A stretch of 64,000 bases of DNA from Mytilus trossulus (Eukaryota): positions 35,650,001 through 35,714,000 of the forward strand of contig NC_086379.1 in NCBI RefSeq assembly GCF_036588685.1, written 5' to 3'. Below, one piece after another: positions 33,101 to 57,204 of this stretch. A model generated the notes under the pieces. The model searched no databases and was not told the DNA's origin. It saw only the letters and a program-made list of their open reading frames with translations. Position numbers and translations under genes: made by a program. Numbering within the stretch: position 1 is the first letter of the stretch; each line of letters starts with the position of its first letter.

Positions 33101-35022
33101 TTGATATGGAATATTTGTGTAATGGTGCTATTTTGAACAAGGATTTAATTAAGAATATTGAAAATGTATGTTTTGAAAAATTTAAGGGAGAATGGTATGA
33201 CAAGATTATGTCAGATGATAAAAATAAATTACGTACATATAGAATGTTTAAAAATGTATATGGCGTAGAAAATTATTTAATTTTTAATATACCAGGTAGA
33301 TACAGGAGTGCTTTAGCAAAATTTAGATGCGGTGTAGCACCCATCAGAATTGAAACTGGTCGTTATGAGAATATTGATATTGAAAATAGATTATGTTTTA
33401 ACTGTACTGATGACGTTGAAGATGAAAAACATGTTTTGTTAAACTGTCCTGTATATTCAGAGATTCGTAATGTTATTTTTAACCATGCTAGTATTGTTGA
33501 TGAGAATTTTTTACATATGTCTGATAATGAGAAATTTATATTTCTTTTTACAAATGAAAATATGGTATTTTATACTGCCAAAATCTGCTATGAAATTTTA
33601 ATAAAGCGAAAATGTATTTTATATTCGTGATAGTTGACTTAAGTTGTATTTGTATTATAATTTAAAAAAATTGTTTTATAGTCTCTCATAACTCTTTATA
33701 GAGTGGCTCTTGTTGTTAATTTGTGTTTTAAAAAGCTGTATATTTTATATGTAACAAGTGGTGAGACTTTAATAAAGTATTTGTCTTGTCTTGTCTTGTC
33801 TGTAGTTATAGAATGGGAGTGCCAAGTATGGGATATGGTGAGGCTATAATTAGTAAGTAGACAGGAAAAGAGACACTCTAATTAGTAGGTAATTATCAGG
33901 AAAAACCACATGTCCCCATTCAAAAGTGTTGATTTTTTAAATAGAAAATAAGGGAGGGGGGGGGGGGGTTCAAACCCCTCAGAACTCCATCTGCCACTGA
34001 ATGTTCCTTAGCATATAAGGAATTAATGACATTCATGACATTACACTGAATAGTGTAAATCAAGAACTTGTGGGATATTTTTTTTTCCGTGGGATTCACT
34101 CCAATAATAGTGATTTAATTTATCAATGGTTCTTTCGACAGTTTTAAATCACTGTTTCATAGCTAGGCACTACTAAATAGAAGGATGACTGATGCACTAT
34201 ATACTAAATATCTCTTTAATTGAATAATTTCAATATGAAAAATAAATATAGTTTTGACACCTGGCATTAAAACAGATGGTAGACCAATTAGAGTTACATG
34301 TTTAAACTTGCATTTAAATAATAGGATTGGAAACTGTTACTTCTTTTAATGTGTTGACCTTAATAACTACATATAATTAGTGCTATTGTTTTTTTCTTCA
34401 AATTGAATTGCATTTGATTGAATTGAATTTTTTCATTTCCTTGAACTGAATTTTGTTTTGGTAGATTCATCTTAAGCTCTTATTAAACCAAATTAGATCA
34501 CAGCCCAAATTACTCAATTTATGTTATCATGGTGATAAATTAATGAAATGTAAAGTACAAGTTTTAAAAGAATCTAGTGTCTTAAGACATACCTGCCAGT
34601 GGTCACTGTTTAATTGAGGGATTAAAGTTGTTGATTTACAAACCAACGAATCTGTTTTTCTAAATTTTTTCATGAAAAATTTATGTTGAAATTATTTTTT
34701 TTCCCACTGCTAATCAAAGGGGACAATAAGTGTCACTCTTGACTGAACATCTGTCTTTCCAACTGTCCTTCTCTTTGTCCCATTTTATTAGCAAAATGTT
34801 TTTTGTTTAATGTATAAGATGAACTATTTACAGTGATGTGTTTTTGTCCTCAAAATTTGCCAAAGATACATTTTTATTTGAAATTTTTCAGGAAAGAATG
34901 GTGAATTGTCATATACAATTTTATGGACACCAGCGAGATACAAAATGTTATATGGATATCTGGTGGCAATATGTGTGTGTTTACTAGTCTGTCTGACCTC
35001 CAGGTTGTTTAGAAAGAGATGA
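15132..35022 (+). CDS. MPPE1/PGAP5/Cdc1-like calcineurin-type metallophosphoesterase with N- and C-terminal TM helices, about 358 aa; join(15132..15274, 16340..16450, 17151..17313, 18133..18270, 18829..18969, 21995..22045, 23332..23530, 34892..35022)
   Basis: Eight exons with GT-AG introns and consistent phases give a 1077-nt CDS. N-terminal anchor IILTIIIGTVLFNECFIYII..WP; motifs SDPQLQG, RWDIDRYL, FLGDLIDEG, PGDNDIGGE, LTH, RPHLIFSGHWH, PTCSYRMG; C-terminal TM YGYLVAICVCLLVCL. Orthology to MPPE1 itself versus a paralogue is not established. Confidence 0.9.
15680..15930 (-). repeat. Abundant interspersed repeat, related to copies at about 5275-5360 and 10410-10630
   Basis: Reverse complement contains agatgtggtgtgagtgccaatgagacaactct...ccattataggttaaagtacggccttcaacacggagcc, similar to the 5277 and 10410 copies. 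Confidence 0.65.
17354..17962 (+). mobile_element. Two adjacent short Helentron/HINE-like non-autonomous elements (about 17354-17610 and 17682-17962)
   Basis: Both begin tttttatgc(c/t)cc..gggcattatgttt, carry GTCC-rich simple repeats and share the 3' end catggtccactgaacataga..gtgc..tggggcatc..gggacacatt. Confidence 0.65.
20992..21784 (+). mobile_element. Helentron/HINE (DINE-1/Pearl-like) non-autonomous element with an internal ~165-bp tandem repeat
   Basis: 5' tttttatacgcccg with its inverted partner cgggcgtat near the 3' end; (GTCC)n microsatellite; internal units starting ggacaataact at about 21060, 21221, 21389 and 21549; 3' hairpin tgcgctaaagcgca. Confidence 0.75.
23457..29705 (+). repeat. 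83-bp tandem array, about 75 units, made of the last ~74 nt of coding exon 7 plus its GTAAGTAGA donor region; continues at 33801-33863 after the LINE
   Basis: Unit CACAGAAATCATGGTACCTACATGTAGTTATAGAATGGGAGTGCCAAGTATGGGATATGGTGTGGCTATAATTA|GTAAGTAGA, period 83 (23458 to 23541). The first unit is the real exon end (TEIMIPTCSYRMGVPSMGYGVAII). Confidence 0.97.
29706..30139 (+). CDS. C-terminal fragment of LINE ORF1 with an RG/N-rich low-complexity tail
   Basis: Open frame ..RIYKDVCINNAIPSAQRLLNSNLRSIVNAIG...RGRGNTRGGNSH...RGRGNYRGQNGGH, ending at TAG 30137-30139. Confidence 0.65.
30140..33630 (+). pseudogene. LINE ORF2 (apurinic endonuclease + reverse transcriptase + C-terminal CCHC), one frameshift near 31040
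   Basis: EN motifs FWNING, GGVGIL, VYLPP, GDWNSR, VDY, PDH; RT motifs KSPGYDEI, YRGITL, QNGFRKGRST, FIDFKKAYD, GLKQGCILSPLLF, YADDLV, YLG; C-terminal CFNC..EDEKHVLLNC. Confidence 0.93.
33801..33863 (+). repeat. Final partial 83-bp unit of the exon-7/donor array
   Basis: tgtagttatagaatgggagtgccaagtatgggatatggtgaggctataattagtaagtagaca, followed by unique intron sequence. Confidence 0.95.
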
Positions 35023-35590: not shown

Positions 35591-36885
35591 TTTTTAGCTC
35601 ACCTGGCCCAAAGGGCCAAGTGAGCTTTTCCCATCACTTTGCGTCCGTTGTCCGTCCTCGACCGTCGTCCGTCGTCATTGTTAATTTTTGCAAAAATCTT
35701 CTCCTCTGAAACTACTGGGCCAAATTGAACCAAACTTGGCCATAATCATTATTAGGGTATCTAGTTTAAAAAATGTGTGGCGTGACCTGGTCAACCAACC
35801 AAGATGGCCGCCACAGTTAAAAATAGAACATAGCGGTAAAATGCAGTTTTTGGCTTATAACTCAAAAACCAAAGCATTTAGAGGAAATCTGACATGGGGT
35901 AAAAATGTTTATCAGGTCAAGATCTATCTGTCCTGAAATTTTCAGATGAATTGGCCAACCAGTTGTTGGGTTGCTGCCCCTGAATTGGTAAAATTTTGCT
36001 GTTTTTGGTTATTATCTTGAATATTGTTATAGTTAGAGATAAACTGTAAACAGCAATTATGTTCAGCAAAGTAAGATTTACAAATAAGTCAGCATGACTG
36101 AAATGGTCAGTTGACCCCTTTAGGAGTTATTGCCCTTTATAGTCAATTTTTAACCATTTTTTCGTAAATCTTAGCTATCTTTTACAAAAATCTTCTCCTC
36201 TGAAACTACTGGGTTAAATTCAATCAAACTTGGCCACAATTATTATTGGGGTATTTAGTTTAAAAAGTGTGTCCGGTGACCCAGTCCACCAACCAAGATG
36301 GCCGCCACGGCCGAAAATAGAACATAGGGGTAAAATGCAGCTTTTGGCTTATAATTCAAAAACCAAAACATTTAGAGCAATTCTGACATGGTGTGAAATT
36401 GTTTATCTGATCAAGATCTATCTGCCCTCTAATTTTCAGATGAATCTGACAACCCATTGTTGGGTTACTGCCCCTGAATCGGTAATTTAAAGGAAATTTT
36501 GCTGTTTTTGGTTATTATCTCAAATATTATTATAGATAGAGATAAACTGTAAACAGCAATTATGTTCAGCAAAGTAAGATTTACAAATAAGTCAACATGA
36601 CTGAAATGGTCAATTGACCCCCTAAGGAGTTATTGTCCTTTATAGTCAATTTTTAACAATTTTCATCAAATTTGTAAATTTTTATTAACATTTTCCACTG
36701 AAACTACTGGGCCAAGTTCATAATAGATAGAGATAAATGTAAGCAGCAAGACTGTTTAGTAAAGTAAGATTTACAAACACATCACCATCACCAAAACACA
36801 ATTTTGTCATGAATCCATCTGCTTCCTTTGTTTAATATTCACATAGACCAAGGTGAGCGACACAGGCTCTTTAGAGCCTCTAGTT
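35591..36885 (+). mobile_element. Helentron/HINE (Pearl/CvA-like) non-autonomous element with ~490-bp internal tandem units
   Basis: 5' tttttagctcacctggcccaaagggccaagtgagc; GTCC/GTC microsatellite; units starting aaaatcttctcctctgaaactactggg at about 35693 and 36187; 3' aggtgagc plus hairpin gaggctct/agagcctc (aggctctttagagcct). Confidence 0.85.
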
Positions 36886-39420: not shown

Positions 39421-40942
39421 GTTTGTTATATACATGTAATAGTATAGACCAACCTTACGCCAGATCCTTAAGGGTAGAAGATCCTTAAACACCCAAGCCA
39501 TTGCCATCTGACATTATATCCAAACACTGACAAAAAACATCAAATTCAAATTGATTAATGGAATCCAGGCCTTAATTGTTGTAGAAAATGTATAGGGTTG
39601 TTTCATTTTACAAAATATATGTGCAGTTATATGTATACATTAAATGTATGTATGTTTTTCTTAGTGTGTGATCTGTTTCTGATTGCAATATTGTAAGCAA
39701 AACATTCCAATATTTTTTATAATATTATCTTTTTTAACCTGACAAATTTTAAAATGCTTAAATGCTTATGATGCTTGCATTGTGATACTTAAGCTCTTTT
39801 CTTACCTTGTACCAATATATATGAATATTTTTTATGGTTGTGTTGATTATGTATATTTATAATTTTGTGCAGTTTATATGATATATGATATAAAATGTCA
39901 AATGATGTATTTAATACAAAATGTCAAATGATGTATTTAATACAAAATCAATTTATATATAGTTGTTGAGTCTTTTTATATGAAAATGTATTCTTTTTTA
40001 AACTATTATCAAGATAATCAGAATTTAAAATGAATTGAGGATAAAAACAATAAAAGAGACAGAAAACACCGAAGAGTCTGTCAAAAATGATTGGTCAGAA
40101 AAAAACCAACACAGTAGTGTTACAAGTAAACACAAAAACAGATGTTCACCAGGCCTTGAAGGCATAACACTTTGCTCAGTCCTCTACTCTAAGCATAAAA
40201 ATCATCTTGGAAACATGAAATCCAGCAATTTGATTGGTTGATTTCGATTCTGAGTACAAAAATCATGCTAGAAAGTTTTATTACCATGAGGGCAGACAGG
40301 TTTAAATTTTACTTGATATCCACCTCATTTCAAGGATAAGTGATCAAGGTTGAAGTTTCATGATTATGTATATTTCTCAGATACTGTAAGCTGTGTGTCT
40401 TCTATATTTGGTGTATGGAATGATTGCAAGATGTACATGTCAGTCCAGAAGGTTTCATCTGACCTTGCACTTAATTTATATGCATGGTTCATTGGTCAAT
40501 ACTAAGTTTGTGTTTTTGTCCATTTAACTAACACTATAAGCAAAAGGTAATTATAATACTTAATATTATACCTTGCATATTATTTGATAAGCAATTATAT
40601 TGGATGATACAGTATCATTTGACATGGAATAATTGAAGAACACATCACCTTAAGAATGTTATTTAATTTCTTACATCATTGTTACATTGAATCACCAGTG
40701 TAATGATAATGATATGAAGTCATATAATCGTTGTGTTGTTTTAGAAATATTCTAACTCTCTTTTTGTCAAGAAACATATGCATATATATTTGTACGTTCA
40801 TTTAAAAGATTTTCAGTAACATTTCTAATTGACATTATATGTATACATAGATATTTGAACTGTAAAACTGAGTTTCACCAAAAACTTATTTATAAATAAA
40901 AAATAAATTCTTTCACAAATGCAATAAAACAATTTTTTTTTG

Positions 40943-43900
40943 TTAATATCCTTTTGCAATGAGCTCGGTGATTGTTGCCACTAAAGGGTTATAATCTTTT
41001 GCATTTCCTGCTGATAGTTGTCCCGATTCAAATATTTTCCACCTTCCATAAGATTTAGAAACCGAACACATGATAACAGCTTGTGAATTACCAGCATCGG
41101 AAAAAGAAGTTTTACATAGATTATTTTGACGATTCGATGCTTTAAAAAACTTTAAACTTGGATTTGGATACTTTGAAATGCTTGGAGAGTTCCATGCACT
41201 TAATGTAAAAAACAAATGTGTTACATCATGTGGAATTTTACTGATATGAACGTCAATAGTATGATGGCCAGTTTTGTTTGCATAATCATTTCGGTCACCT
41301 GAATGTTCAACACCAGCTTCAGAGATTTTTTTTCTGTAATCAATTGTTTGGTAATGGTCAGGACCACAGAACATCAAGCAGGAAGCATCAAGAAAATCAA
41401 GCTGATATTCCTTGTTTCCTAAACCAAAAAACGACAACAAACTGCTGGTTTCCTTCATTGGAAATCCCCAATACAGATCGAAAACGACATGATCGAAATA
41501 TTCTGGAATGGCATAGAGGCATACAACCAGGCAAATCTTCGAATTCGATGTCACTCCAAAACTTGACAGTTGAGCTTCCTCATTCTGAAAAATAAAATAA
41601 AACGTGTAGATAAGACAAACTTGATTAACCATACTTTGCTTTAGAATTAGAGGCTCTCAAGATCCTGTTTCGCCCACCTTGGTCTATTTGCATATTAAAC
41701 AATGGACACAGATAAATTCATGACAAAATTGTGTTTTGTGATGGTGATGTGTTTTAGATCTTTCTATACTGAACATTCTTGTTGCTACAATTATCTCTAT
41801 CTATAACGAACTTTGCCCAGTAATAAAAGTTGAAAATATTTCTTAAAAAATTTACAAAGATATACAAAAATTGATGAAAACTTAAAAATTGACCTAAAAG
41901 GGCAAACACTCTTTAAAGAGTCAATTGACAATTTTGGTCATGTTGACTTATTTGTAGATCTTATTTTGTTGAACATTATTGCTGTTTACAGTTTATCTTT
42001 ATCTATAATAACATTCAAGATAATAACCAAAATTTCCTTAAAATTTCTAATTTGGGGGGCAGCAACCCAACAACTAGTTGTCAGATTTGTCTGAAAATGT
42101 CAGGTCAGATAGTAATAAACAATTTTACCCCTCGTCAGATTTGCTCGTAATGCTTTTGTTTCAAAGATATAAGCCAAAATCTACATTTCATCCCATGTAC
42201 TATTTTTAGCAATGGGGGCCATCTTGGTTGATTGGCCGGGTCACTCCACACATTTTTTAAACTAGATACCCCAATGATGATTGTGGCCAAGTTTGGGTTA
42301 ATATAGCCTAGTAGTTTCAGAGGAGATTTTTTTTAAAAGAATACTAAAATTTTAAAAAAATGGTTAAAACTTGACTATAAATGGCAAAAACTCCTTCAGG
42401 GGTCAACTGTCAATTTTAGTAATGTGAACATTATTACTGTTTACAGTTTATCTCTATCTTAATAACATTCAAGATAATAACCAAAATCTGCAATATTTCC
42501 TTAAAATTACTAATTTGGGGGCAGCAACCCACCAACGGGTTCTCAGATTTGTCTGAAAATTTCAGGGCAGCTAGATCTTGACCTAAGTAACAAATTTTCC
42601 CCATGTCAGATTTTCTCTTAATGCTTTGGTTTCAGAGTTAAAGGCCAAAATCTACATTTTACCCCTATGTTCTATTTTTAGCCATGGCGGCCATCTTGGT
42701 TCGTTGGCCGGGTCACGCCACACATTTTTTAAAACTAGATACCGTATAGCGGGTTATTTTCGCGGGTGTAAAATTTCGCGTTTTTCATTGAATAAGGTAT
42801 ACGAAAAATTTTGGCGGTTATTATTTTGGCGGACTCAACATTTTTAACATTACCTTTGCATGTACACTTTAATATTGGCGGAATTTATTTTGGCGATTTT
42901 GTTCTATCCGCGAAAATAAGCGAAAATTTACACCCCGCGAAAATAACCCGCTATACGGTATTCCAATGATGATTGGACAATATGACAAATTAAATGAAAT
43001 ATAGGGGGAGACCCTGGTGTCATCCCGTCCCTCCTGTTTGAGAACTTAAAAACAGTCGAGATCCCCACCCCTAAACCATATATATCTGCATGTATGGGAC
43101 AATAAAAAAAAATATAGGGGTTGTCCTAGGGTTACACCCCCCTCCTGTGTGTGTTCGAGAACTAAACCATATTTATTGAATTTCCTGTTCGTCATTTCAA
43201 AAAGATTTTAATGACCTACAAGTTCATTCTCCTAGGCCTCGCATATACATGTCACAATATGTACTAGACTTTGTCCGATATCAGGCGACCATGGGAATGA
43301 ATAATTATGGGAGCTTTGTTTGGGAGACTATGTAACAGCATCTTGTAACAATTATTTCATGTTTATTATACAATTTTATTGATGCAAAAAATGAGTAGGT
43401 TCATGGCTCATTTTAAAGAAAATATATAAACCTTCCAAGCCCAAGAATGTTTGACCAACTGTTTTATAATCACCTGTCATTTCATTCCAAATTTAGGACT
43501 TAGGGTGAATGTGAGGGTAATTTACATTTACTATGGGCAGGTAAGTCAGACCTCACCTTTGATCCCTATAGTAGTAAACATTTGTCTAATTTGTGTCTCA
43601 TTACTTTTGTACTGTAGAACACACACGCAGTTTTCTTTCCAGAGAAGGCAGTCCATTCATACTATTACAAGCTCGTACTATGTCAACTTGTACTACTAAC
43701 AGTCAAATAAAACCAACGTTATAACTACCAACTAGAACAACTGCAATCATGCGAACCTATACCAATGCAGACTCACCATTAACAATATATATTGATATAT
43801 GCGCTGCTTTTGAAAACCTTGATAAAATATAAACTATTTGCCTTAAGAATTAATTCATTAAATAAACATAAATGTACAATATATGAATGTTCAATGTTTG

Positions 43901-46900
43901 TTCTTTTAAATCATTAAACAAAATTGAAGCAATATTGCCACAGTTTTTATTATTACGTTTGCATTGGTTTTTGGTTAACTGCCTACAGCGCTTACAGTGC
44001 TTTGGTTTGGTTGATAAAAACAAATAGTGTAATAAATAAAATTTGGAATGAATTTTTTTTTTAAATTTGCTGAAATTTTTGTACCCTCGAGACTCCTTAA
44101 ATTTCTTCGTATAGTTGGGACCGTTATTAATTTTTTGCAAGTGACAAGCTGTTATTTCATATATTCACTAAGTGTCACCTAACGTTGTAACAAACTAAAA
44201 CAAATAGGGGAAGTCAGGAAATCAAGGACGGACGATGGTGGACGGAAAGTCAAACATTCGAACGGTTAATGATGACAAATTGCCTAAAATGAGTAATATA
44301 GAATACTTCTAATAATAATGTAGCAACGTAGGTACAATAACGAGAATAATTAAATTAACACTGATTATTGTTTTAAATGTTCATATTGAACTCTATGCTG
44401 TTCTAAACTGTGATCGACAAAGCAAATAGCAATATAAGACAACACATATATTTTGAAGAAAGTTATTAATTTGAAAAAAATCTTTTAAATTTGCCGAGTT
44501 TTCTGTACAAATTACACCTAAAATAAAGAATTAATTATTAATTTTATTTATTTACCTGCATGTCTTTTCCCTCAAACACAAGTTTCTGTTTATTTTGTTC
44601 GTGACCCAGACGTTCTTTTATTATATCTTTCAACTGATTAATGGTCATGGACTGGGATAATGGAATTCTGATGGATTCCCCAGTCAGGTCTGTGATAATA
44701 ACATGCTCATCCTCACCAGATGCGCTGTGGTCTTTTTGTTGATAGGAAGCCTCGTATACTGTAAACATTTGGGAAAGAATCTTCTCAAACAATGCAACAC
44801 TATCAGATTCTGTTTCAATGTCTACAGCACATTTAGGGTAAGGGCATTTTCCATTTTTTGTTGCATTGTCAACCAAACACTGAAAGAAAGAAATGTCTCT
44901 TAGTTTGATAGTAAGAAAACTCATGTATTTGTCCAGATAACAATAAATTACGGAAATAGTTAATACAGTAAATGCAATAGAAAGGCACCGAACTAGGCAG
45001 TTAAAGTCGCTTGTCCTTATTCAACATAAATAGAATAATATTCACCATGTCTTAAAACAGAAAAGAGATGGATACACTGCAATCACAATGTACGAAATAT
45101 TTATTGCCACTGGGAGTTGGACAAAAACAAAATCATGTATCATGAAAAAGTTGACGTCTTTCCCTCGCTCTGTAACACTGTAAATGCAAGGAAATGTTTT
45201 CTGCAGTCCGATAAATTCAAATAAAATTGAGAATGGAAATGGGAATGTGACAAAGAGACAACAACCCGACCATATAGCAGACAATAAAACTTGTTTATGT
45301 ATATATATGTAGGACTCTAAAATGCGATGGGGACGCTAAAGTACGATGGTCACGCTAAAGTGCGATGGTCTACGCTAAAGTGCGATGCCAACACACGCTA
45401 AAGTGCGATGCCAACACACGCTAAAGTGCGATGCCAACACACGCTAAAGTGCGATGGTTCGCGAAAACTATCGACGCAAAAAGCGTACTGACGTTACGCA
45501 CGATGGTGCGTCGCAAGACGTAAAATATATAATTGACAAATTTGACGCCATATACTAACTTTGACATTTTGTTATCAAGAGCGGAGTACCTATACTCGAT
45601 CAACTTTTATCAAGTAAATACCATAAGCTGGAGAAATGTTTCAAAATTTATCACTTATAAGGCAATTGATTACGTAAGGATCGATTTTTGAAAGATTAGA
45701 ACTTGTTCTAAATCTTTACTAAGGCACTGGCCTCCCTAACAACATGATAGGGTAGCTACTGTTACTAAATGTATTCACACTGAAATGTAGTTCCCTATAT
45801 TTCTCATGTATGTGCACATAATACACATATAAACTGAAAAAAATGGTATATTTTTGGAGTAGTTCATCCAAGAATGTATGTAACTAAGATGTGTTGATGT
45901 GTAGGCTTTTTTCGATAACATTTTGATTAGGTAATTGGGTATTGATACAATACTATAATGATTGGCAACTGTCATTATCGCCAAACAATCAGAGACAAGG
46001 TGGACCTTTACTTACAATGCCCCACCCTCGGCCCCACCTCATAAACTGTTAATCAAATTGACCACATTACTTATCAACCTCAGTCTTACATAATTAGAAC
46101 CTTCAAATTACAACTTCAATATACACACATTTGACCTCATAATTGAATACACAAATGTATATATTACATGTTTGATATAAATAAGGATGATAGATTTAAT
46201 TATTGCCTATTACTTTTGATCGACAATACATAAAGTGATTCTGTAAAATTTAAAGATAAATGATCAATTTGATTAACAAGATCTTTAAAAAAAAATGAAA
46301 TATGAATATAAATATGAATTTATAAAAGCTATTCAAGTAAGGCCTATAATTTACTTGATAAATTTCCATGTTACTCAACTTTTTTTGATTTTTAGACAAA
46401 GGCAGATAACTGTAATCTTAATTATTTCCTTTCACAGTGACGTTATGGTTATTTTTAGAAAATAAACTCATGCACCATCCTCAACTTAATAATTTCTCTT
46501 GACAAATATCTTTATAAAGTGGACATACACATCATTCTAAAACCTGAATATCTGAGTTATATCTAATAAATAAAACAAGGTTTAACCCAAAACAATAATT
46601 ATCTGTAATTAATCAACAATTAAGATTAGTTCACTTATTTTTTTATCATCAGGAATTGGCTTGAAACAGTTATAAAATTTTAAAACTTTTAATTAAAATA
46701 AACCATAATGATTGTTTATTAATTTATCCCCCCATTAATCATTATGTATATTTTAGTTACTTGAATTTTTATGAAAAGTGAAAATATATTTTTGCAATCA
46801 AGAAAGAATCCAAATTTTAATAAAATAAGTTTTTTTCAAATTTGTTAACGTTGAAAAAGTACATTTTCAATGACCTTTTTTTTTTTAAAATACTTTGAAA

Positions 46901-49900
46901 ATTGACCAAAAGACACTCTGCAACTGTTAATCTTCAATGTCGTATAACCTATGTTTCAACTTACAAAATGCTCCAAAACAACATATCTAGATTATGTTTG
47001 TTGACACTTTACAGTTCTTAGCTGTTGGTCTAGATTTTATTGTCTTACAATGACAGATGTAAGCATTTACAAGGAGAATGTTTGGTTTGCAATTGTTTTG
47101 TCTTTTTAAACATGTTTAGAATAGGCAACATTATTTGGATAAGATATAAACTGCAATTTAAATATAATTGTGCAAATTAAGAGACTCATATTATTTAATT
47201 AAATGAGCTCATTTATTCTCAGAAAAGCACTTTTCCTTCTTAAGACCTGTGGTTAATGCTAATTTCAGCAATAGTGCTCTATTAATGTTCATTTTCCTCC
47301 AACATATATCAATATGAATTTTTTAAAACTACTGGACTTCTAATCTTTTCATGAGTGATTTCCATCACTTTGATTATTTTCTGATCTGTGATGAGATGAA
47401 AACAAATGCAACTGTTTCCAAATTTAATTGAGATAGAATACATTGCAATCTATAAAAAAAAATCTTGCTCCCGGAGGGACACATGAGAAATTAGATCTAG
47501 CCTTGACAATTTTTTGACAAATTTCACATAAAAATCGGTCATTCAGCAATATTTCTTTTGATAATGATTTTAGTTGAAATGATTTTTTTATTAGATTGAA
47601 ATCACTTTTGTCCAATATCTGTATGTGTCTGTGCGAGTTTTTTTACAAATACGTACTTATATAATTGTTAAAAAATTATAAGACCATTGTACCTCTGGTT
47701 CTAATCGATTTCTAATCTATAAAGGTGTTTTAGATTTGCGTGAAAACTTCTGTCCAAAAGAAATTATCCCTCGGCCCAACCCCTCTTTTCCCTGTGTCTT
47801 TAAAGGGTTTATTCTTTATGTGTGTGTGTGTTTCTCATCTGTGTGTTATTTTGATTCAGTAGACCATTTTGGAATGAATATTTCCCGGCATCATTTTAAC
47901 TGCCTAAACAGTTCGTAAATAGTGTGTATTTGTACAAAAGACGCCACTGCGCAGAAACGTCCAAATGACTTCCTTGGACATAATGGATAGACAAAGGGAA
48001 TGCTTTCCGAAAAAAATTTGAAAGGTCATAATGTTTGTGAAAACAACCGACTCATTTGTATGAACTTATAGTTTGTATCTTATAAATATGTTAGTTTTGT
48101 ATTATAAATGCTCATTTAGTATTTATACAACATGTTTCACCTAAGGAATGGACAAAAATTACGTTTGAACATTCGTTTTTTTAAGACACTTCTTGAAGAT
48201 TTTTTTTTTTTACATTGAAACTTTGAAAATGTTGATCTTTTTTAGAACTTTCTACTGAGTATTGATTAGATATGATTCGATTATTTTATAGGGATGATAA
48301 TAAAACTGAAATTTTGATAAACTTTCCTCATATTAACACATTGAGACAGGTTCCTCTCCTGAATATTTATTTAGCTGAAGGCTTGCTTCAAATTTAAGCC
48401 AATACCAAAAAAACGGGTATGATGTTAAAATTCAAATCTAGTAGGAAGCTGATATATACTAAATTTCGATTTAATGTGCAAAATTACAACGGAACATAGA
48501 CAAATGCATTTTATTTAATCTGAAATGTTACGCTGGACATGCAATTTTTAACGCAAAAGTAAGATTTGTGTGTTTAATAAAATAGATGTATGGTGCAAAA
48601 ATTTATAGAATTAACTTAAAATACAAAAAATATGTCCGGCTTTTCTATAGATATATAATATGGGTGTTGGTGATTTTAATTTGTATAGGCAAATGATTGC
48701 TGTTCTAAAATCATATAATAACGTTTTACCGTGCGTAACGTCACTATAAATAATGACGTGAACAGTCTTTTATACAGACAACAAATGAAATGCCGAAAGA
48801 TAAATGTAGAATATTTGATTAACAACTTTACAGCAAATGTCCATGACTTACTCAATTTAAACATGATAACCGTGTTTTGTCGGCTAAAGCAAATGTGGAT
48901 TTTTTTCGGTGCTTGAAGAAGGACTTTTGTCCTGCAGTCGACTATCTTACTATACATATACAAAAGTATACGCATAAGTATCCTTTATTCTGTTTCTATT
49001 TGAAGCTAACGGTTACATTGAAATCATTGTTTATGTTGCAGTTTGCTTTGCCGTTCCCGTTCAAATATTGTCAATTTTAATGAAAAATCAAGTTGGTTAA
49101 ATAAAGTTTAATTAGCAATTATTACGTGGTCGTTCTTCTTAATTTAGAACAATGATCACTTAAGTCTACCGGTAATTATAAAGCCTATCAAATATGTCAT
49201 AAAACCTTGTACTAGCTTTCGCAAAAAGACTCTTTTTTTAAAATCTGTGATCTTAAATACCTTAAGCGCGTTAACATTACCCTTTTAGTCCATCGCACTT
49301 TAGCGTGATAAACCATCGTACTTTAGCGAACAAACAGCCATCGCACTTTAGCGTGATACACCATTGTACTTAAGCATAGACCATCGCATTTTAGCGTGAC
49401 CATCGCACTTTAGAGTACCATCACACTTTAGAGTACCATCACACTTAAGAGTACCATCAAACTTTAGAGTCCTAAATATATATTTATATAGATAATTTAG
49501 TTGATCTGTAACAATAACATCTTCATGCCTTATATATCATGTACTGTAGTACGCCGCTAGATTAAAACTGACGTGGAAAGGTAACACATGGCCAGCGAAA
49601 GCTCTTTTTTTGAGAGCCCAGGTGGTCGTGTGGTCTAGCGGGACGGCTGCAGTGCAGGCGATTTGGTGTCACGATATCACATTAGCATGGGTTCGAATCC
49701 CGGCGTGGGTAGAACCAAAAATTTGCGAAAGCAAATTTACAGATCTAACATTGTTGGGTTGATGTTTAGAGGGGTTATATATATATATATATATATAAAC
49801 GAGTCTAAATTGAAAACTACGTTCATTCCTATGATTGCGTTGGATAAAAACCTCAATTTTTATACGTGTGCATGTAAAACAAATTTCGTAGAAGAGTCTA

Positions 49901-52900
49901 AATGTAGAAGAGTCTAAATACAGCACAAACAACATTTTCCAAAAGACCAAAAAAGTATATTCAAACAAAACGCATTTGACTAACAGGTCGAACAACTGAT
50001 GTTCTTTAACCCTGCTGACTGCCATTGCCGATTGCCAAATAAAATGTCGCAAGATGTAACAAAATAAATCTTAATACAAATTAAATACTAAACATAAACC
50101 AAAAAACTTGTGGTCAAGATGTTATGCCACAAACATAAGGTGCCATTATTTTTTCAGGAGAACTTCCTTTATAACCGACTATACGGTATAGATTTTCCTC
50201 ATTTTTGAATGCCGTACATTTGATTTTGATGATTGCTGACATCCACTTCATTTAAATTTTAGTGGGTAGTTGTCTCATTGGTCACCATATAACATCTACA
50301 AATTTCTATATGTGAGAAAATACAACAAAAACACAGTTGGAATGCCATCTAATGCATTCGGCAAACAAAGGACTATGTTCACTAAGCACCCTGTCCCCCC
50401 CCCCCCCAAAAAAAAAATCATCTGTAATAATTGACTATCTGCAAGCTTCAAAATTCAATATTTCACTAATTCTGCATTTTTCAATTTTGGGTTCTCAATG
50501 CTCTTCAACTTTTTACTTGTTTGGCTTTATAACTATCTGAGCGTCACTAATGAGTCGCATGAAGACGAAACGCACTTCTGGCGTACTAAATCATAATCCT
50601 GGTACTAGTACCTTTGATAAATATTTCCACCACTGGGTTGATGCCACTGCTGGTGGACGTTTCATCCCCGAGGGTACCACCAGCCCAGTAGTTAGCACTT
50701 TTGTGTTGATATGAATATCAATTATATGGTCATTTTTTCCTGTTACAAAATTTTGAATTTTTCGAAAAAAAACTAAGGATTTTCTTATCCCAGGAATAGC
50801 TTACCTTAGCCGTATTTGGCACAACTCGTGTCAAGTGTACTGTGATTAAAACAGTGCAATTTCTGATTTGAATGACTGATAATTTATGGTCAACTACTTT
50901 CACACTAAATGTACAGAGAAATGATTACAAAAGAATACAGAAAAATTGTCGCCGATGCCATCTAGAAAACATTAAAAAAAAAAAAAAAAAAAGGGATTGT
51001 GAGGGTTTTTGTCAACGAATTGTACAGGGATAAATTTAAAACGAGCAACGAACTCAAAACATTTGTCGAAACGAACGGTGCAGTACGAGAAAACTTATTT
51101 ATTTAGTCACAGCTATTTCGTTTATTCTGAGTTCTAGACAGGATTTGAAGTCATGCAGTTATTCAACGTATAGTTATCTAGGTATTGATACGCAAAAAAC
51201 GTTTATGTATGAAAACATATTCAGCATTGTTTACCTAACAAAACGTAGGAAATCACATCATGCCTGCGTTTTTGGCGCATCTAGCAGTTGTATCAAATGT
51301 TTTATACAATATCTAAGACTTGCAACAATTGAATAAATAAACATGCACATTGACATATTGACATGTACTAAAATAAGTTGAATTATAAATTATTGTCATC
51401 CCTAATGTTGTCCTGATTAATGATTCGAACGCGTCAACGTCCGAATTCATTCGTATCGGGGTTAAACGGAATGATTTACTATGCAAATGATAGGAAGCTA
51501 TTGAATTATTCGATTGTAGAATCTTGTCAATTCGCAATACAGCTTTTATAGTTTTTCAACCACTCGCGATCGCTCAACATGGAAGCGGAAGTGACGACGC
51601 ACCTAAATGCACGAGTGACGTTCACTTAAACCAAAGTTTTTTACGGAAATGCATCGAACTCGAAAGTTATCTATTGTAACAGGATGCTGTTACGAATTAT
51701 CACAAGCAAAAATTCAATAATTCGGCATTCCCATGGTCGCCTGACATTAACTTTGCCGCAAACCGGTACAGTATAAATGGGTTTAATCTAGTCAAGTCAA
51801 AATTACAGTTCCTAAAGAACGAAAAAAAAACAAAAAATGTATATAAATGAATACATCTATGTCAGTACTACAAAAAATTACTTTTTACAGCAATTTTCAT
51901 AATTAGGCCAAACATTGAAAAACATTCGTGTATCTGCTTCTCCATAATTACAAGGAGTGGTTGGGATATATCCTTAATAAGATTTAAAATAATATTTCAT
52001 CATGAGTTACATTCACATTTTTATTAGTCTCTAAAGAAGCACTTCTGTCGGTAAGAAATTTCGTTTCGTTTTTATCGTCACAGAAAAAACTACTCCAAAT
52101 CCTTGGTGTTCTATCAGAACCAAATTATTTCCGTCTAGCACAAGAAATGTGCCTTTGTCTTGTCACAGCCTTTAAATTATTAATTTGGTAAAAACCAAAT
52201 ACAATATCTACTATTGATTACTTATCGATGCAAGAGTTTATTACACCATTTGCATGATCATAAAACATAGTTCCCCAACTTGTTGGCATGGTATTAGCTC
52301 AACCAACGATAAATGCGTCAAAAATTGAATCAGCAAATCGCAGAATGTTTTAAGTATATCCATTTGCATCGACTTTTAATACCACTGTTTTATGTCAATT
52401 TGGTTTTTATGGATACAGAAATATTCCAAATACAACTGTCTACTGTGACAAGAAATGAATAGTTTTGAAAAGATATCGCAATCATTGTAAAGGTTCTTTT
52501 GGTTTTGACAAGACGCTTCCAGTTTTATTTTACGACCATGATAGGAATCTGTTGTTTTTCACCTGGTTATAAAAACAGGTTCTCCTTCGTTTCGAATTTG
52601 CTGCAAAAGATCTTCGTATTTTAGAGTTGATATAAATATCTTACCTGCTTCCGAATCAACAGTTTCCTTAATAGTTATCAAAAGTACCAGGATTATAATT
52701 TAGTACGCTTGACGCGCGTTTCGTCTACATAAGACTCATCAGTGACGCTCATATCAAAATATTTATTAAGCCAAACAAATAAAAAGTTGAAAAGCATTGA
52801 GATTTTTTTTTACAAATCTGACGACTCTTCTAGAAATGGATTTCCAAACTAGTTCATCACTTTTCAAAGCCTTTGGAAATTTTTAAAGAAATCCTTTGTG

Positions 52901-55900
52901 TTTTCGTAGATTTGTCATGATGTCATTCATCTCTTGTATTTTCTACGTACAAAACAGACCATTCCCTCTGAATTTTTATAAGCCAGCTGATCTGCAGTTA
53001 CAATTGATGTTTCTTCGGTATTAACCAAACTGTCGCCTTATCCATCGAATACATGATCATTGCAACTGAATAGACGTGTTTTAGTGGCATCATAGAAGTT
53101 ACATCACTGAAGTTACACTTACTTAAACAGCTCTAGAAGAGCCTCGATTTTTTAAGAGTAATGAAAAGAACTACGATGTTTACCAGTATACTCTGGTAGT
53201 ACATGCACATCGCTTTTGATATCTAAATATAGTTTGCATACGCGCAAAATTGTTCGCATCATCCATGTGTATCTTTACCATGAACAATTTTATCATACCA
53301 ATTCATAATTATATCATTAAAAATAGAAAAGCACAAACAAATATAGTAAATAGTTTAAATGTTTTTGAATGAATTTTGTTACATTTTTACGAATGCGCAT
53401 ACCCTTGATATGTCAAATATTCATTTCTAGTAAATACGTCACATGTAAGGAAGGTAGCCACCAAAAGAAGAACAAAGAAAGTCTTCTAGAAAAAAACAGT
53501 ATTTTCAAGCCTAAAACAACCATTTTAGAAAAAGGCCGTGGCCCTCTTGATTTTTTTATTTTAATGGCTAGCAGTTTCTAAAAGGAATATGATAATATCA
53601 GATTATTACATGGCATTATTCATATCGCATGTATTATCAGCCCGAGGTTCAATATCAGCCCAAGAGCCGCATGGCTCGAGGGCTGATATTGACTGAGGCT
53701 GATAATACATGCGATATGAAAAATGACATGTTATGATCTTTTTATCATATGCTTCAACGATGGAGAAAAATCACAGATTCATATATTGATCCTTTTACGT
53801 GGTTCCCAAATAGATGTTCAAAGGGTGAAAAGTTCATGTTCATTCAATATGATATCTTTTTATCATATGCCTCAACAGAGAAGAAAAACATTAAAATTTT
53901 GACGAAACGACAAAAAAAATATATTCAGAAATATACATAATAAACACTGTTTGGAAAAGTCAACTTTTTTGTAAAGTAACTTTCTAAATTATGTTGGAAA
54001 CTTTTAAACGCATTATTTTATAATTTGATTTTTTTTTTGCTTTTGTTTTTTTTAAATTATTTTACAAAAAATACTTTTAAGTATGCAAATAGTTGTTTTG
54101 TACACTACTTTGTAATGTTTTTCAGTGAAAACGTAGCATTGAGTTGTATTTTCCGGAATTTGCCGAGTTTTACCGGAATGCCATGCGATAACATTACAGA
54201 AAGGCATGTGAAAACACTTGAAGCATGTGATAAACTTTTCATATCAGCCCGCTAAGCACCAGTTCGAAAAATATGGAATTCACGTTAATCTAATGCTATT
54301 ATCATACAGTAAAAATAATATGTTATTTAGTCTAAGTATATGATAATGATGCTTTGTGCTTATGCTCATGTTTGTATCATTATTTGCACAATTCCCTCGA
54401 TTTTGCTTGCTTATATCTTCCACTATTGGTAAAATAGCGATAAACAGATTACTTATGGTCTTCTCAATCGATTGCTTTTCTCGCAATCGCCGTTGAGATG
54501 ATCAACGATAATCTATAAATATCAAATAAATAGTTTGTAGTATCATGGAAGTATCACATTATACATCCATGGTAGTATCAAATTGATAATCTGTAATATC
54601 AAATATAAAATCCGTAATATCAAATTGATAATTGTTATATCAAATTGATAATCTGTTATATCTAATTGACAATGTGTTATATAAAATCAACAATTTGTTA
54701 TATCAAATTGGAAAAAGAAAACTAAAAGAGGGACGAAAAAAGATGGACGAAAGACACCAAAGGGACAGTCAAACTTATAAATCTAAAAGAAACTGACAAC
54801 GCCAAGGCTAAAAATAAAAAAAGACAAGCATACAAACAATAGTTCACATGACACAATATAGAAAACTATAGAAAACAACACGAACCCCACCAAAATTAGG
54901 GGGGGATCTCAGGTGCTCCGGAAGGGTAAGCAGATCCTGGCTCCACATGTGGCACCCGTCGTGTTGTTTATGTGACAAAAAACTCCGGTAAATAGTCTAA
55001 TTCAGTAGGTCAAATTCTTGAAAGGGAAGGGAATGTAGTTACGACGTAAGAGACATATCCGATATCATTTGAGAAACGGTTATTCCATAACGGTCAACCA
55101 ACTCGTGATGGCGTCCGTAAAATTTACGAAAGGATGATATCAACTTCACCACTTGGAACGCTTGGTTTAATAGCTTCCTTGTGAGCAGCAACCCTTTATC
55201 AAGAAAATCATGATAGGAAATACAAGCACGGGAATATCGTATCAATTGGGAGATATATACCCCGTATGCAGGTGCTCCTGGAATGTTGCTACTTAGAAAT
55301 GGAAAGTTTACAATTGGAAAGCTGAAATCGTCTCTATGGTCGTAAAGTTTTGTTTTCAACCGACCCTCATTGTCAATTTGCCGACTTAACTGTATCTGTA
55401 GTATCCTTTATCTCTAGTTTGATGGGATAGATGTGTTCCACATAGTCACCAAATTTTGAATTATTTAGTGAAAGAATATCATTAAATAGCGGAAAGTAGA
55501 GTTAAAGGATATTGCTAACTTCTTGTCTTTCTTCCGAAGAAGTTCCTGCATGAAGTCTGCCTCATAATAATACAGAAACAAGTCGGCAAGAAGGGAGGCA
55601 CAGTTTGTTCCCATTGGAATGCCGACAATCTGTTGAAAAACACGTCCTCCGAATGTTACAAAAAGTAAAATCACAAAAATACTGAACTCAGAGGAAAATC
55701 AATTTGGAAAGTCCATAGTCACATGGCAAAATCAAAAAACAAAACGCATCAAAAACGAATGGACAAGAACTGTCATATTCCAGACTTGGTACAGGCATTT
55801 TCAAATGTAGAAAATGGTGGATTAAACCTGGTTCTATAGCGCTTACCCTATCAAATTCCGCTACATTTAAATGATGTGTTAAATAAACAGTCACAATTAA

Positions 55901-56464
55901 CAAAATAGTCAAAATATGGGTACATCAGTCATCATCGTATAACAATTTTAAAAGGAACAATTTAATTGTCGTTCAATGTGCATACAAACAATTTTAAAAT
56001 TTACATAGGCAATGTACGCATACAGGGTTAAAAAATCAAAAGTATGTAAGAATAATTTACAGCAATAGACCGAGATTCAAACTAGTCCAAAAGTTATCCA
56101 TAAAATTTATGAGAATCCAAAACTTTTAAAAGGAACAATTTAACAGGACACAAAAACATCTACTATCTACAAACACATGGATTGATTTGAGTGTCTGACG
56201 TCAGAAATAAATATGTTGTCATTTGTTTGCCGTCCTATTCGGTTATGGAGTGTGCACATATTCTTTTAACCAAAGGAATACAGATAAAAAAAACCTGTAA
56301 GAAAACAACTGTTGATAAAGAAAAATGAAAAATACACAAGTATCTAGAAATTTGGACAAACTCACCCTGAGACATACTAAGCAGGGGTGATCACATTTTG
56401 TAGATGCATTCTCTGGACAAAACTCCTCAGACAATTTTTCCAAGTTACATATAACGCACGTCAT
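40943..56464 (-). CDS. RING-like Zn finger + ubiquitin-like domain + TerD domain protein, about 354 aa; join(56366..56464, 44556..44879, 40943..41584)
   Basis: Three phase-0 exons with GT-AG boundaries give a 1065-nt CDS. CVIC..CDHPCLVCLRC..KCPYPKC (RING-like); IITDLTGESIRIPL..MTINQLKDIIKERLGHEQNKQKLVFEGKDMQ|NEEAQLSSFGVTSNSKICLVV (Ubl); LYW..DFLDASCLMF..HSGD..TIDVHISKIPHDVTHLFFTLS..AVIMC..WK..G (TerD-like). Confidence 0.85.
41648..42975 (-). mobile_element. Inverted, more degraded copy of the 35591-36885 Helentron/HINE family (intronic in the TerD gene)
   Basis: Starts agaggctctcaagatcctgtttcgcccaccttggtctat, the reverse complement of 36843-36881; two internal units with gcagcaacccaa..ccatcttggtt. 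Confidence 0.85.
42742..42958. mobile_element. Tc1/mariner-type MITE with TA TSD, nested in the HINE
   Basis: TA|CCGTATAGCGGGTTATTTTCGCGGG ... CCCGCGAAAATAACCCGCTATACGG|TA; the host motif aactagata/..ccaatgatgatt is split by it. Confidence 0.9.
45312..49472. mobile_element. 4.2-kb non-autonomous TIR transposon with subterminal CGCTAAAGTGCGATG repeats
   Basis: TA|GGACTCTAAA(A)TGCGATGG...(acgctaaagtgcgatg)n on the left; (ccatcgcactttagcgt)n...TTTAGAGTCC|TA on the right. No transposase ORF seen. Confidence 0.85.
49616..49797 (+). mobile_element. tRNA-derived SINE-like element with a (TA)n tail
   Basis: A-box-like GGTGGTCGTGTGGTCTAGC, B-box GGGTTCGAATCCC, acceptor-like pairing GCCCA..TGGGT, followed by a body and (TA)n. 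Confidence 0.55.
50500..50825 (+). repeat. Hammerhead-bearing repeat with a degenerate core at 50541-50584; inverted copy at 52672-52800
   Basis: gcgtca-CTAATGA-gtcgcatgaagac-GAAA-cgcact-TC-tggcg; flanks match the reverse complement of 52672-52800. Confidence 0.7.
52705..52749 (-). ncRNA. Minimal type-I hammerhead ribozyme motif
   Basis: Minus strand cgtca-CTGATGA-gtc ttatgta gac-GAAA-cgcgc-GTC-aagcg. Core intact, stem III is the palindrome ACGCGCGT, and stem I has mismatches next to the cleavage site. Confidence 0.75.
53600..53740. repeat. Long hairpin-forming inverted repeat (Crypton-like non-autonomous end, tentative)
   Basis: tcatatcgcatgtattatcagcc..caatatcagccc..gagcc gcat ggctc..gggctgatattg..ggctgataatacatgcgatatga. 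Confidence 0.7.
54720..55665 (-). mobile_element. 3' fragment of a Penelope-like retroelement (Naiad-type; RT C-terminus with no downstream GIY-YIG) plus 3' UTR
   Basis: FGGRVFQQIVGIPMGTNCASLLADLFL..FRY; KTKLYDHRDDFSFPIVNFPFLSSNIP..AYGVYISQLIRYSRAC..KFYGRHHELV..; the ORF ends without an endonuclease. Confidence 0.85.
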
Positions 56465-57204
56465 GGTTTACTGATTCAAACCTGAAAATAAATAAATACT
56501 TTATAAGTTAAAGTTACATCTTGAATTGTAAAAATAATGAAGTAAATGATAAATAAATAGGCTAATATAATAATAATACTTTAGCGTATAAGGACCATTC
56601 TCAATGCATTATTAAGACATTTTTAGTTACATTTTTTGGTTGATCAGTTGTTATGAATTTTAACTAGTTATCAGTAATAGCGAGTATTTCATATTTATAC
56701 TTTCTGTAACTGTTGTTTTTGTTATTGCAGGAAAGTATGAAGAATGGATAAACACCCGCCACATCCGGTGTGTTTTTTGTTTGATTGGTGTTTTTCTTCT
56801 TGAATCAGTCTGATGAGTAAGGCATTTTTCAAATGATTTTTAGAGTTTGTTCTTATGTTGTGCTGTTACACCACTGCCCAAGAACGGGTGAGTTTATTTT
56901 TGTCCCACTTACAAACATGTTAATTCCACATTATTTTAGTGTCTGTCACAAGTTAGGAGCCTGTGGTTCAGTGGTGTTCGTTTGTTTAGATCTGTCATGC
57001 TATTTGTTTTTCGTAAATTGTTATGCTATATAATTAGGCTGTTAGTTTTCACAATCATATAACTGGAGAAATTTTTAATAGCCGACTATATGATATGTGT
57101 GTTCCTGATTGTTGAAAGTCATAAGGTTGCCTATAATAACTTAAATCCACTTGTTTGTAAATTTGGTAGATAGTTGTCATCATTTGCAAGCATACCATAT
57201 TTTC

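Follow-up and report, generated by a model that had tools for sequence, protein, structure and literature searches.

A spliced gene of Mytilus trossulus joining a RING-like finger, a ubiquitin-like domain and a bacterial-type TerD domain

The 64,000-nucleotide stretch of Mytilus trossulus DNA analysed here (the window; contig NC_086379.1, positions 35,650,001 to 35,714,000) carries on its minus strand an intact, transcribed, three-exon nuclear gene. Its product is a cytosolic-type protein of 354 residues with three modules, in the order cysteine/histidine finger, ubiquitin-like domain (Ubl) and TerD domain. The exons are in phase 0 throughout, the introns are of the GT-AG type, and the span holds no N. 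As a first-pass annotation of the same letters had proposed, the three exons join cleanly: their translations of 33, 108 and 213 residues are identical to residues 1-33, 34-141 and 142-354 of the NCBI entry 'uncharacterized protein LOC134726371' of Mytilus trossulus (P0001). The exons were searched singly, and the whole-protein analyses were done on this public protein, matched slice by slice to the exon translations. Both introns also split domains in the way first described, with intron 1 interrupting the finger between C31-L-R and C34, and intron 2 falling inside the match to the ubiquitin profile PF00240. In window coordinates, the gene is laid out as follows.

56366 to 56464, minus strand: exon 1, residues 1-33, from the ATG at 56464-56462 to the donor AGG/GTGAGT
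56366 to 56464, minus strand: content of exon 1, the finger ligands C3, C6, C24, H26 and C31 (from ligand conservation in the alignments) and a conserved K-L-S-x-E-F motif
44880 to 56365, minus strand: intron 1, 11,486 nt, GT..AG, containing repeat debris and splitting the finger at R33/C34
44556 to 44879, minus strand: exon 2, residues 34-141, with the acceptor TTTCAG/TGT, i.e. TCTTTCTTTCAG/TGT, and the donor CAG/GTAAAT
44829 to 44879, minus strand: finger ligands C34, C45 and C50, from the translation
44556 to 44879, minus strand: within exon 2, a helix (residues 59-71) and then a low-confidence linker (74-87), from the structure model
44556 to 44708, minus strand: first two thirds of the Ubl, from the translation and profile
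41585 to 44555, minus strand: intron 2, 2,971 nt, GT..AG, within the Ubl, placed by an RNA contig joint; its 41.6-43.1 kb part is highly repeated
40946 to 41584, minus strand: exon 3, residues 142-354, followed by TAA at 40945-40943, with the acceptor TTTTCAG/AAT, i.e. TTTATTTTTCAG/AAT
41516 to 41584, minus strand: last Ubl strand, the first 20 residues of exon 3 matching the last strand of ubiquitin
40952 to 41509, minus strand: TerD beta-sandwich domain, residues ~167-352
41402 to 41449, minus strand: 16-residue insert (residues 187-202) between two TerD strands, of lower model confidence, from alignment A1 and the model
41261 to 41305, minus strand: loop H235-S-G-D ... G247-H-H249, by HMMER alignments the counterpart of the bacterial HTGDN..GDGDDE calcium loop
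40758 to 40942, minus strand: 3' untranslated region (UTR), at least this far, since the RNA contig reaches 40758
40667-40662, minus strand: ATTAAA signal, a hexamer downstream of the known extent of the 3' UTR

Splicing is directly visible at the second intron. A 1349-nt RNA-Seq contig from run X1 maps to 40758-41584 and 44556-44880, and joins exons 2 and 3 exactly (41584 to 44556, skipping 2971 nt, CT..AC on the plus strand), which confirms the exon 2-3 joint. About 5% of its letters differ from the window, and its source is therefore an allele or a sister species. In run X19, contigs are 100% identical and confined to exons, one of them stopping exactly at 44556, and the unique intron 2 stretch 44134-44555 has essentially zero depth in all runs. 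The exon 1-exon 2 joint is indicated indirectly, by splice consensus, the NCBI model, the intron of a paralogue and spliced homologue contigs. The paralogue, L002, has intron 1 at the same place, and its exon-2 frame opens ...Q/CLVDHV. Among 29 homologues, 27 lie on contigs of 1.1-2.7 kb in which all eight finger ligands are contiguous with Ubl-TerD, and because these contigs are so short they must be spliced mRNAs. The X1 contig also has 116 extra, unplaced letters upstream of exon 2, a total that exon 1 and a 17-nt leader would also give. A good acceptor-like site (TATTTTCAG/G) lies at window 56465-56483 on the minus strand, 17 nt before the ATG, and given this site and the unplaced letters, an additional 5' UTR exon upstream of exon 1 is possible. 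An Rfam scan of 38-60 kb gave no matches.

The Ubl proposed in the first reading of the sequence holds up well. PF00240 is matched by exon 2 alone at 27.2 bits and by the whole protein at 37.5 bits over residues 96-162, and the domain has the beta-grasp fold of its class. Compared with ubiquitin, it has a root-mean-square deviation (rmsd) of 0.9 Å and retains the equivalents of L8, I44, K48 and V70. The end of the domain, ...ICLVVCLYAIPE, continues directly into TerD with no C-terminal GG, which makes it an integral Ubl domain. A conjugatable ubiquitin-like modifier was considered and rejected, as there is no exposed or cleavable di-glycine. In Stylophora pistillata, the 142-residue protein model P0268 (XP_022802179) ends ...GKEIRMN, at the same point of the Ubl as mussel intron 2, which hints that this intron position is common to cnidarians and molluscs.

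The third module is a TerD domain, as had been suggested. On its own, exon 3 reaches 33.2 bits with PF02342, whose gathering cut-off is 25.3; this family is matched by all 55 members of the protein family, and the TerD beta-sandwich fold is present. In addition, a profile of 40 TerD-part sequences (A3) matches TerD chains in the PDB over nearly the full domain (3ibz, E 7.2e-10; 2kxt, E 9.6e-10), and the bacterial TerD motifs have aligned counterparts in the D-x-x-D strand (D204, D207) and in H235-S-G-D238. The replacement of an acidic GDDE-like segment by GHHT, noticed at the outset, is borne out by two HMMER alignments, in which the loop-ending D-D-E of bacteria is aligned to G247-H248-H249. 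HSGD and GHH are invariant in all 55 members of alignment A1, so the change is a family trait and not a quirk of the window gene; in a wider set, H249 is at least 90% conserved and H248 is variable outside animals. The protein is homologous to TerD and lacks the canonical acidic calcium loop, which in the 2KXT paper reportedly reads GDN(R/L)TG(E/A)GDGDDE. The retained Asp residues together with the new His pair suggest a shifted metal preference of the TerD site, and we would give about even odds that TerD binds metal in this protein.

CABP1-type proteins of Dictyostelium are, like the mussel protein, eukaryotic and cytosolic, but they consist of tandem TerD domains without finger or Ubl. The bacterial TerD, TerE and TerZ proteins (PF02342; 2KXT Klebsiella TerD, 3IBZ, 2QZ7, 2QNG Streptomyces) are single-domain and found in ter operons, whereas mussel TerD is the C-terminal module of a spliced fusion. 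The bacterial calcium loop ends GDGDDE where the mussel loop ends G-H-H, and identity is 10-20% to bacterial TerD structures and only 16-20% to the nearest bacterial TerD proteins. Recognition of nucleotide-like molecules has been put forward as a role of TerD (PMC7159879); the TerD passages in that paper and in PMC3710099 deal with bacteria.

The full fusion is widespread among eukaryotes. A finger-Ubl-TerD protein of ~340 residues occurs in many bivalves, in Haliotis, in the brachiopod Lingula and in the amphioxus Branchiostoma, and the fusion is also found in the lamprey Petromyzon marinus (the nearest named relatives of the lamprey protein are all invertebrate), echinoderms (Patiria, Asterias, Amphiura, Anneissia), anthozoans (Nematostella, Exaiptasia, Acropora, Stylophora, Xenia, Dendronephthya and others), the choanoflagellates Choanoeca and Salpingoeca, Glomeromycota (Rhizophagus, Gigaspora, Ambispora, Entrophospora and others), Naegleria and Paulinella. 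All three modules are visible in an alignment spanning these lineages. When 1.84 billion representatives were searched exhaustively with phmmer, only 608 clusters reached E <=0.001. The earlier suggestion that such a protein stands outside the usual model-animal repertoire fits in that no insect, nematode or jawed vertebrate is among the matches listed, an absence that is provisional, though a lamprey protein is. As to a characterised orthologue, which the first-pass annotation had asked after, the architecture is already in databases in dozens of species: members are named 'uncharacterized' or 'Ubiquitin-like domain-containing protein', and precomputed Ubl and TerD Pfam matches are already attached to them. 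We found no literature on animal or eukaryotic Ubl-TerD proteins, and the Ter-system survey of Anantharaman, Iyer and Aravind (2012) may mention eukaryotic TerD fusions. Its absence from the standard model animals might explain the lack of an accessible paper on the family.

This distribution bears on where the gene came from, for which both horizontal acquisition and patchy retention had been put forward. On one hand, TerD is mostly bacterial and is patchy among animals, as might be expected if molluscs had recently acquired a bacterial TerD gene by horizontal transfer, or if bacterial sequence had contaminated the assembly. On the other hand, spliceosomal introns interrupt the gene at two places within domains, with a position shared by a paralogue, and the gene lies on an 85-Mb chromosome among mussel genes and retroelements, one neighbour gene having a minisatellite. 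As regards a ter/TelA operon setting, the gene is eukaryotic and monocistronic. The branching of 44 members in a maximum-likelihood tree agrees with taxonomy (Fungi 97; 26 of the 27 molluscs 97; Mytilus 97), with gastropods placed beside bivalves and group labels needing 8 changes where the minimum is 7. The taxonomy-like tree, the introns and the low bacterial identity together exclude recent horizontal acquisition, and the introns, chromosomal setting, shared fusion and tree speak against contamination as well, so that we regard either origin as extremely improbable; this concerns recent transfer only, and not an ancient bacterial origin of eukaryotic TerD. Since the fusion is shared across animals, fungi, choanoflagellates and protists, the family is an ancient eukaryotic one. 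Patchy retention is supported by this eukaryote-wide distribution, and the history we favour from the sequences is an old eukaryotic fusion that was probably lost many times. We are highly confident that the three-module architecture and the ancient vertical origin are, taken together, correct.

Within the mussel genome, the family is represented by four intact copies and a single fragment. Of these, the window copy lies at 35.69 Mb of chromosome C7, and 34 Mb away, at G000:C7:69.80-69.92 Mb, there are three intact paralogues, 58-60% identical, and a fragment with two stops (L002, L003, L004 and L005). Both intron positions of L002 equal those of the window gene. Its closest partner in the tree is M. 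coruscus P0002, to which it is 87% identical; the pair has a long stem of 0.71 changes per column and adjoins a M. californianus copy inside the Mytilus clade. From this stem and its place within the clade, the window copy is a duplicate of Mytilus-lineage origin that evolves fast. The insert at residues 187-202 is unique to the window copy among the 55 rows of A1, in which M. coruscus P0002 is not included. It also lacks 5 residues at the exon 2/3 junction. Of 114 highly conserved columns it differs at 7, among them H304D at a column conserved to 98%, against a median of 4 and a maximum of 13 across the family. The stem, the insert, the deletion and H304D, along with the solitary position far from the three-copy cluster, could all be read as signs of a decaying or neutral duplicate, an extra copy evolving fast without a function of its own. 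Against such decay, the frame is open with every invariant residue present, the conserved-column departures are within the family range, the M. coruscus orthologue is still 87% identical, the gene is transcribed and spliced, and by a rough count the 3' UTR of the X1 contig differs more than its coding part. We consider a neutral duplicate quite improbable. A pseudogene was rejected on the grounds of the open frame, the invariant residues kept, and transcription with splicing; the copy is diverged and not decayed.

The N-terminal finger was originally described as RING-like. Its eight Cys/His ligands, of binuclear type, are spaced C-x2-C-x17-C-x-H-x4-C-x2-C-x10-C-x4-C, and these ligands (C3, C6, C24, H26, C31, C34, C45 and C50) show little or no variation, whether among 55 close members or among 15 that range from lamprey to Paulinella. 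The window copy has two additional Cys in the finger region, C16 and C28. The finger is modelled with a predicted local distance difference test score (pLDDT) of 91-96, and a helix comes directly after ligands 5-6, as in RINGs. Reference sets for hhalign were 30 TRIM-type RINGs and 9 RBR RING1 fingers cut from the mussel genome; against these, N-terminal profiles of the family aligned with ligands 3-8 in register, at a probability of 45-61% (E 8e-5 to 2e-4), and the remainder of the protein, as a negative control, gave 0.1%. An Atlas structure search with residues 1-72 returned, among the nearest, clusters of RBR-type ubiquitin ligases (E3s; TM 0.57-0.71), and also RING clusters, which we take as a lead only.

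Several results weigh against a RING that works with a ubiquitin-conjugating enzyme (E2). RING fingers follow the pattern C-x2-C...C-x-H-x2-3-C-x2-C...C-x2-C, and the H-x4-C and C-x4-C spacings of this finger fall outside it, with C-x2-C found in some lineages. None of the Pfam RING models attains its cut-off among the 55 members and the fungal P0151: zf-RING_2 is found below cut-off in 5 of the 55 (E 0.12 or worse), zf-C3HC4_2 in one of them (E 0.018), and P0151 reaches 20.6 bits on zf-C3HC4 against a cut-off of 21. The positive control for hhalign, RBR RING1 against TRIM RING, gave 96%, far above the values for the finger. Canonical RINGs hold E2 via a hydrophobic residue after the first Cys pair, and the residue at this position is not conserved in the family alignment. 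For the finger there was no PDB fold match from Foldseek and VIA-align, which were run on the whole model and on the 142-residue N-terminal model (Stylophora P0268, alignment A4) and whose lists were filled by ubiquitin-like matches. Of the original description, then, the eight conserved ligands stand, and membership of the RING class is likely, the finger being best described from its sequence as a divergent RING-type one. We lean slightly against its being a working E3 RING.

The combination of Ubl and finger brings to mind the RBR and Ubl-bearing E3s (parkin, HOIL-1, RNF144, ARIH), in which one chain likewise combines a Ubl with a RING1-like finger. The mussel finger has C-P-x3-C as its final pair of ligands, which resembles RBR RING1, and hhalign of the finger to mussel RBR RING1 gives 46-47%. 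However, the mussel order is finger-Ubl and that of these E3s is Ubl-finger. No IBR and no RING2 with its catalytic Cys was found among 25 of the 40 Pfam families matched by the 55 members, and the mussel protein has only 72 residues before the linker. An RBR E3 ligase was therefore rejected on the Pfam families listed, since a protein with no IBR and no RING2 catalytic Cys cannot act as an RBR.

Relatives in the same TerD subfamily carry other modules in front of TerD. These are F-box-TerD (P0257), vWA-Ubl-TerD (Potamilus P0136, with vWA in place of the finger), SDR-Ubl-TerD (Funneliformis P0158, with a short-chain dehydrogenase, SDR, in that place), and an Ascomycota cluster from the Atlas with UBC, F-box and TerD; these fusions have partners from the ubiquitin system. 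The eukaryotic TerD fusions match exon 3 in phmmer at E 1e-17 to 1e-40, and the representatives checked also include multi-TerD proteins and very large FN3/EF-hand proteins. None of the fusions found here is characterised. Given the F-box, UBC, vWA-Ubl and SDR-Ubl fusions, TerD has been joined to ubiquitin-system modules repeatedly, and because the N-terminal module is exchanged in Ubl-TerD relatives, the conserved core is Ubl-TerD and not finger-TerD.

We propose, with a rough probability of 0.6, that the finger-Ubl-TerD protein acts in the ubiquitin system. TerD would be the sensing or binding module and thus the input of the protein, and its site, shifted from all-carboxylate towards His/Asp, would bind a metal ion or else a small ligand. 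The finger would recruit an E2 or another partner, and the Ubl would dock the protein to ubiquitin receptors or gate the finger. This proposal is in keeping with the sensor-coupled E3 or ubiquitin adaptor first suggested for the gene, a plausible candidate role; metal binding by the His-substituted site would be a putative part of it. The main rival is a non-catalytic adaptor or shuttle, like Rad23, Dsk2 or BAG6, in which the finger is structural or partner-binding, TerD holds a cargo or ligand, and the Ubl delivers the protein to the proteasome or to ubiquitin-binding receptors. Such a role would fit the unestablished RING membership, the variable E2-contact position, the strongly ubiquitin-like Ubl, and the relatives in which vWA or a dehydrogenase takes the place of the finger. 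However, the finger ligands and spacing are kept from Paulinella (8/8) and Naegleria (5/8, three lost) to lamprey, and the F-box-TerD and UBC-F-box-TerD relatives point towards ligase chemistry, so we rate the adaptor as possible and rather unlikely. A bolder form of the proposed ubiquitin-system role would be an ancient class of ligand- or metal-gated single-chain ubiquitin ligases, in which a His-substituted TerD switches a divergent RING; with F-box-TerD and UBC-TerD it would form a hitherto undescribed 'Ter-to-ubiquitin' branch of stress or immune signalling, lost in jawed vertebrates, insects and nematodes and hence overlooked. We offer this only tentatively, and doubt it in its full form.

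To our knowledge, work on TerD has been almost entirely bacterial, and has dealt with resistance to tellurite, colicins and phages and with the binding of calcium. In the protein described here, which is conserved from protists and fungi through corals, molluscs and amphioxus to lamprey, a TerD subfamily is hard-wired to ubiquitin modules. Such a coupling with a bacterial-type stress domain is fairly surprising, and the family has gone unstudied. If TerD does sense a metal or metabolite and control ubiquitination, it would give the ubiquitin system a new input, and would be one more bacterial-type stress domain retained in marine invertebrate biology. For the window alone the result is more modest, as the gene is already annotated, is uncharacterised and has many orthologues.

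The window and the wider genome also hold other features. At window 31108-33630 on the plus strand, just downstream of the minisatellite, is an intact open reading frame (ORF) of 840 residues with a reverse-transcriptase match (PF00078, 126 bits), which looks like a non-LTR retrotransposon. The intron 2 part 41596-43146 has a summed contig depth of thousands to ~116,000 in all four runs, and many contigs skip or go back there; with such depth and skipping, it belongs to a repeat family of very high abundance. The similar short ORFs found at 35688-35936, 36230-36490 and 42135-42290 have a common peptide, ...IIIGVSSLKNVW.DP.NQPRWPP.... In intron 1, two short ORFs at window 55039-55674 on the minus strand (...IPMGTNCASLLADLFL...) resemble reverse-transcriptase debris by eye, and had no Pfam matches below E 0.001. 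Elsewhere in the genome, an intronless, intact UBE2D-type E2 gene (L036:1483-1923, minus strand; G000:C1:71286938-71287348), with E 1e-89 to human UBE2D1-3 chains, may be a retrogene. RBR-type (RING1-IBR) domains were found in single frames of 766-3015 residues at L045-L057 (e.g. G000:C10:59.47-59.55 Mb, C1:80.70 and 91.14 Mb, C9:3.83-3.85 Mb), and these are thus very large, apparently intron-poor mussel RBR genes, some of them in tandem.

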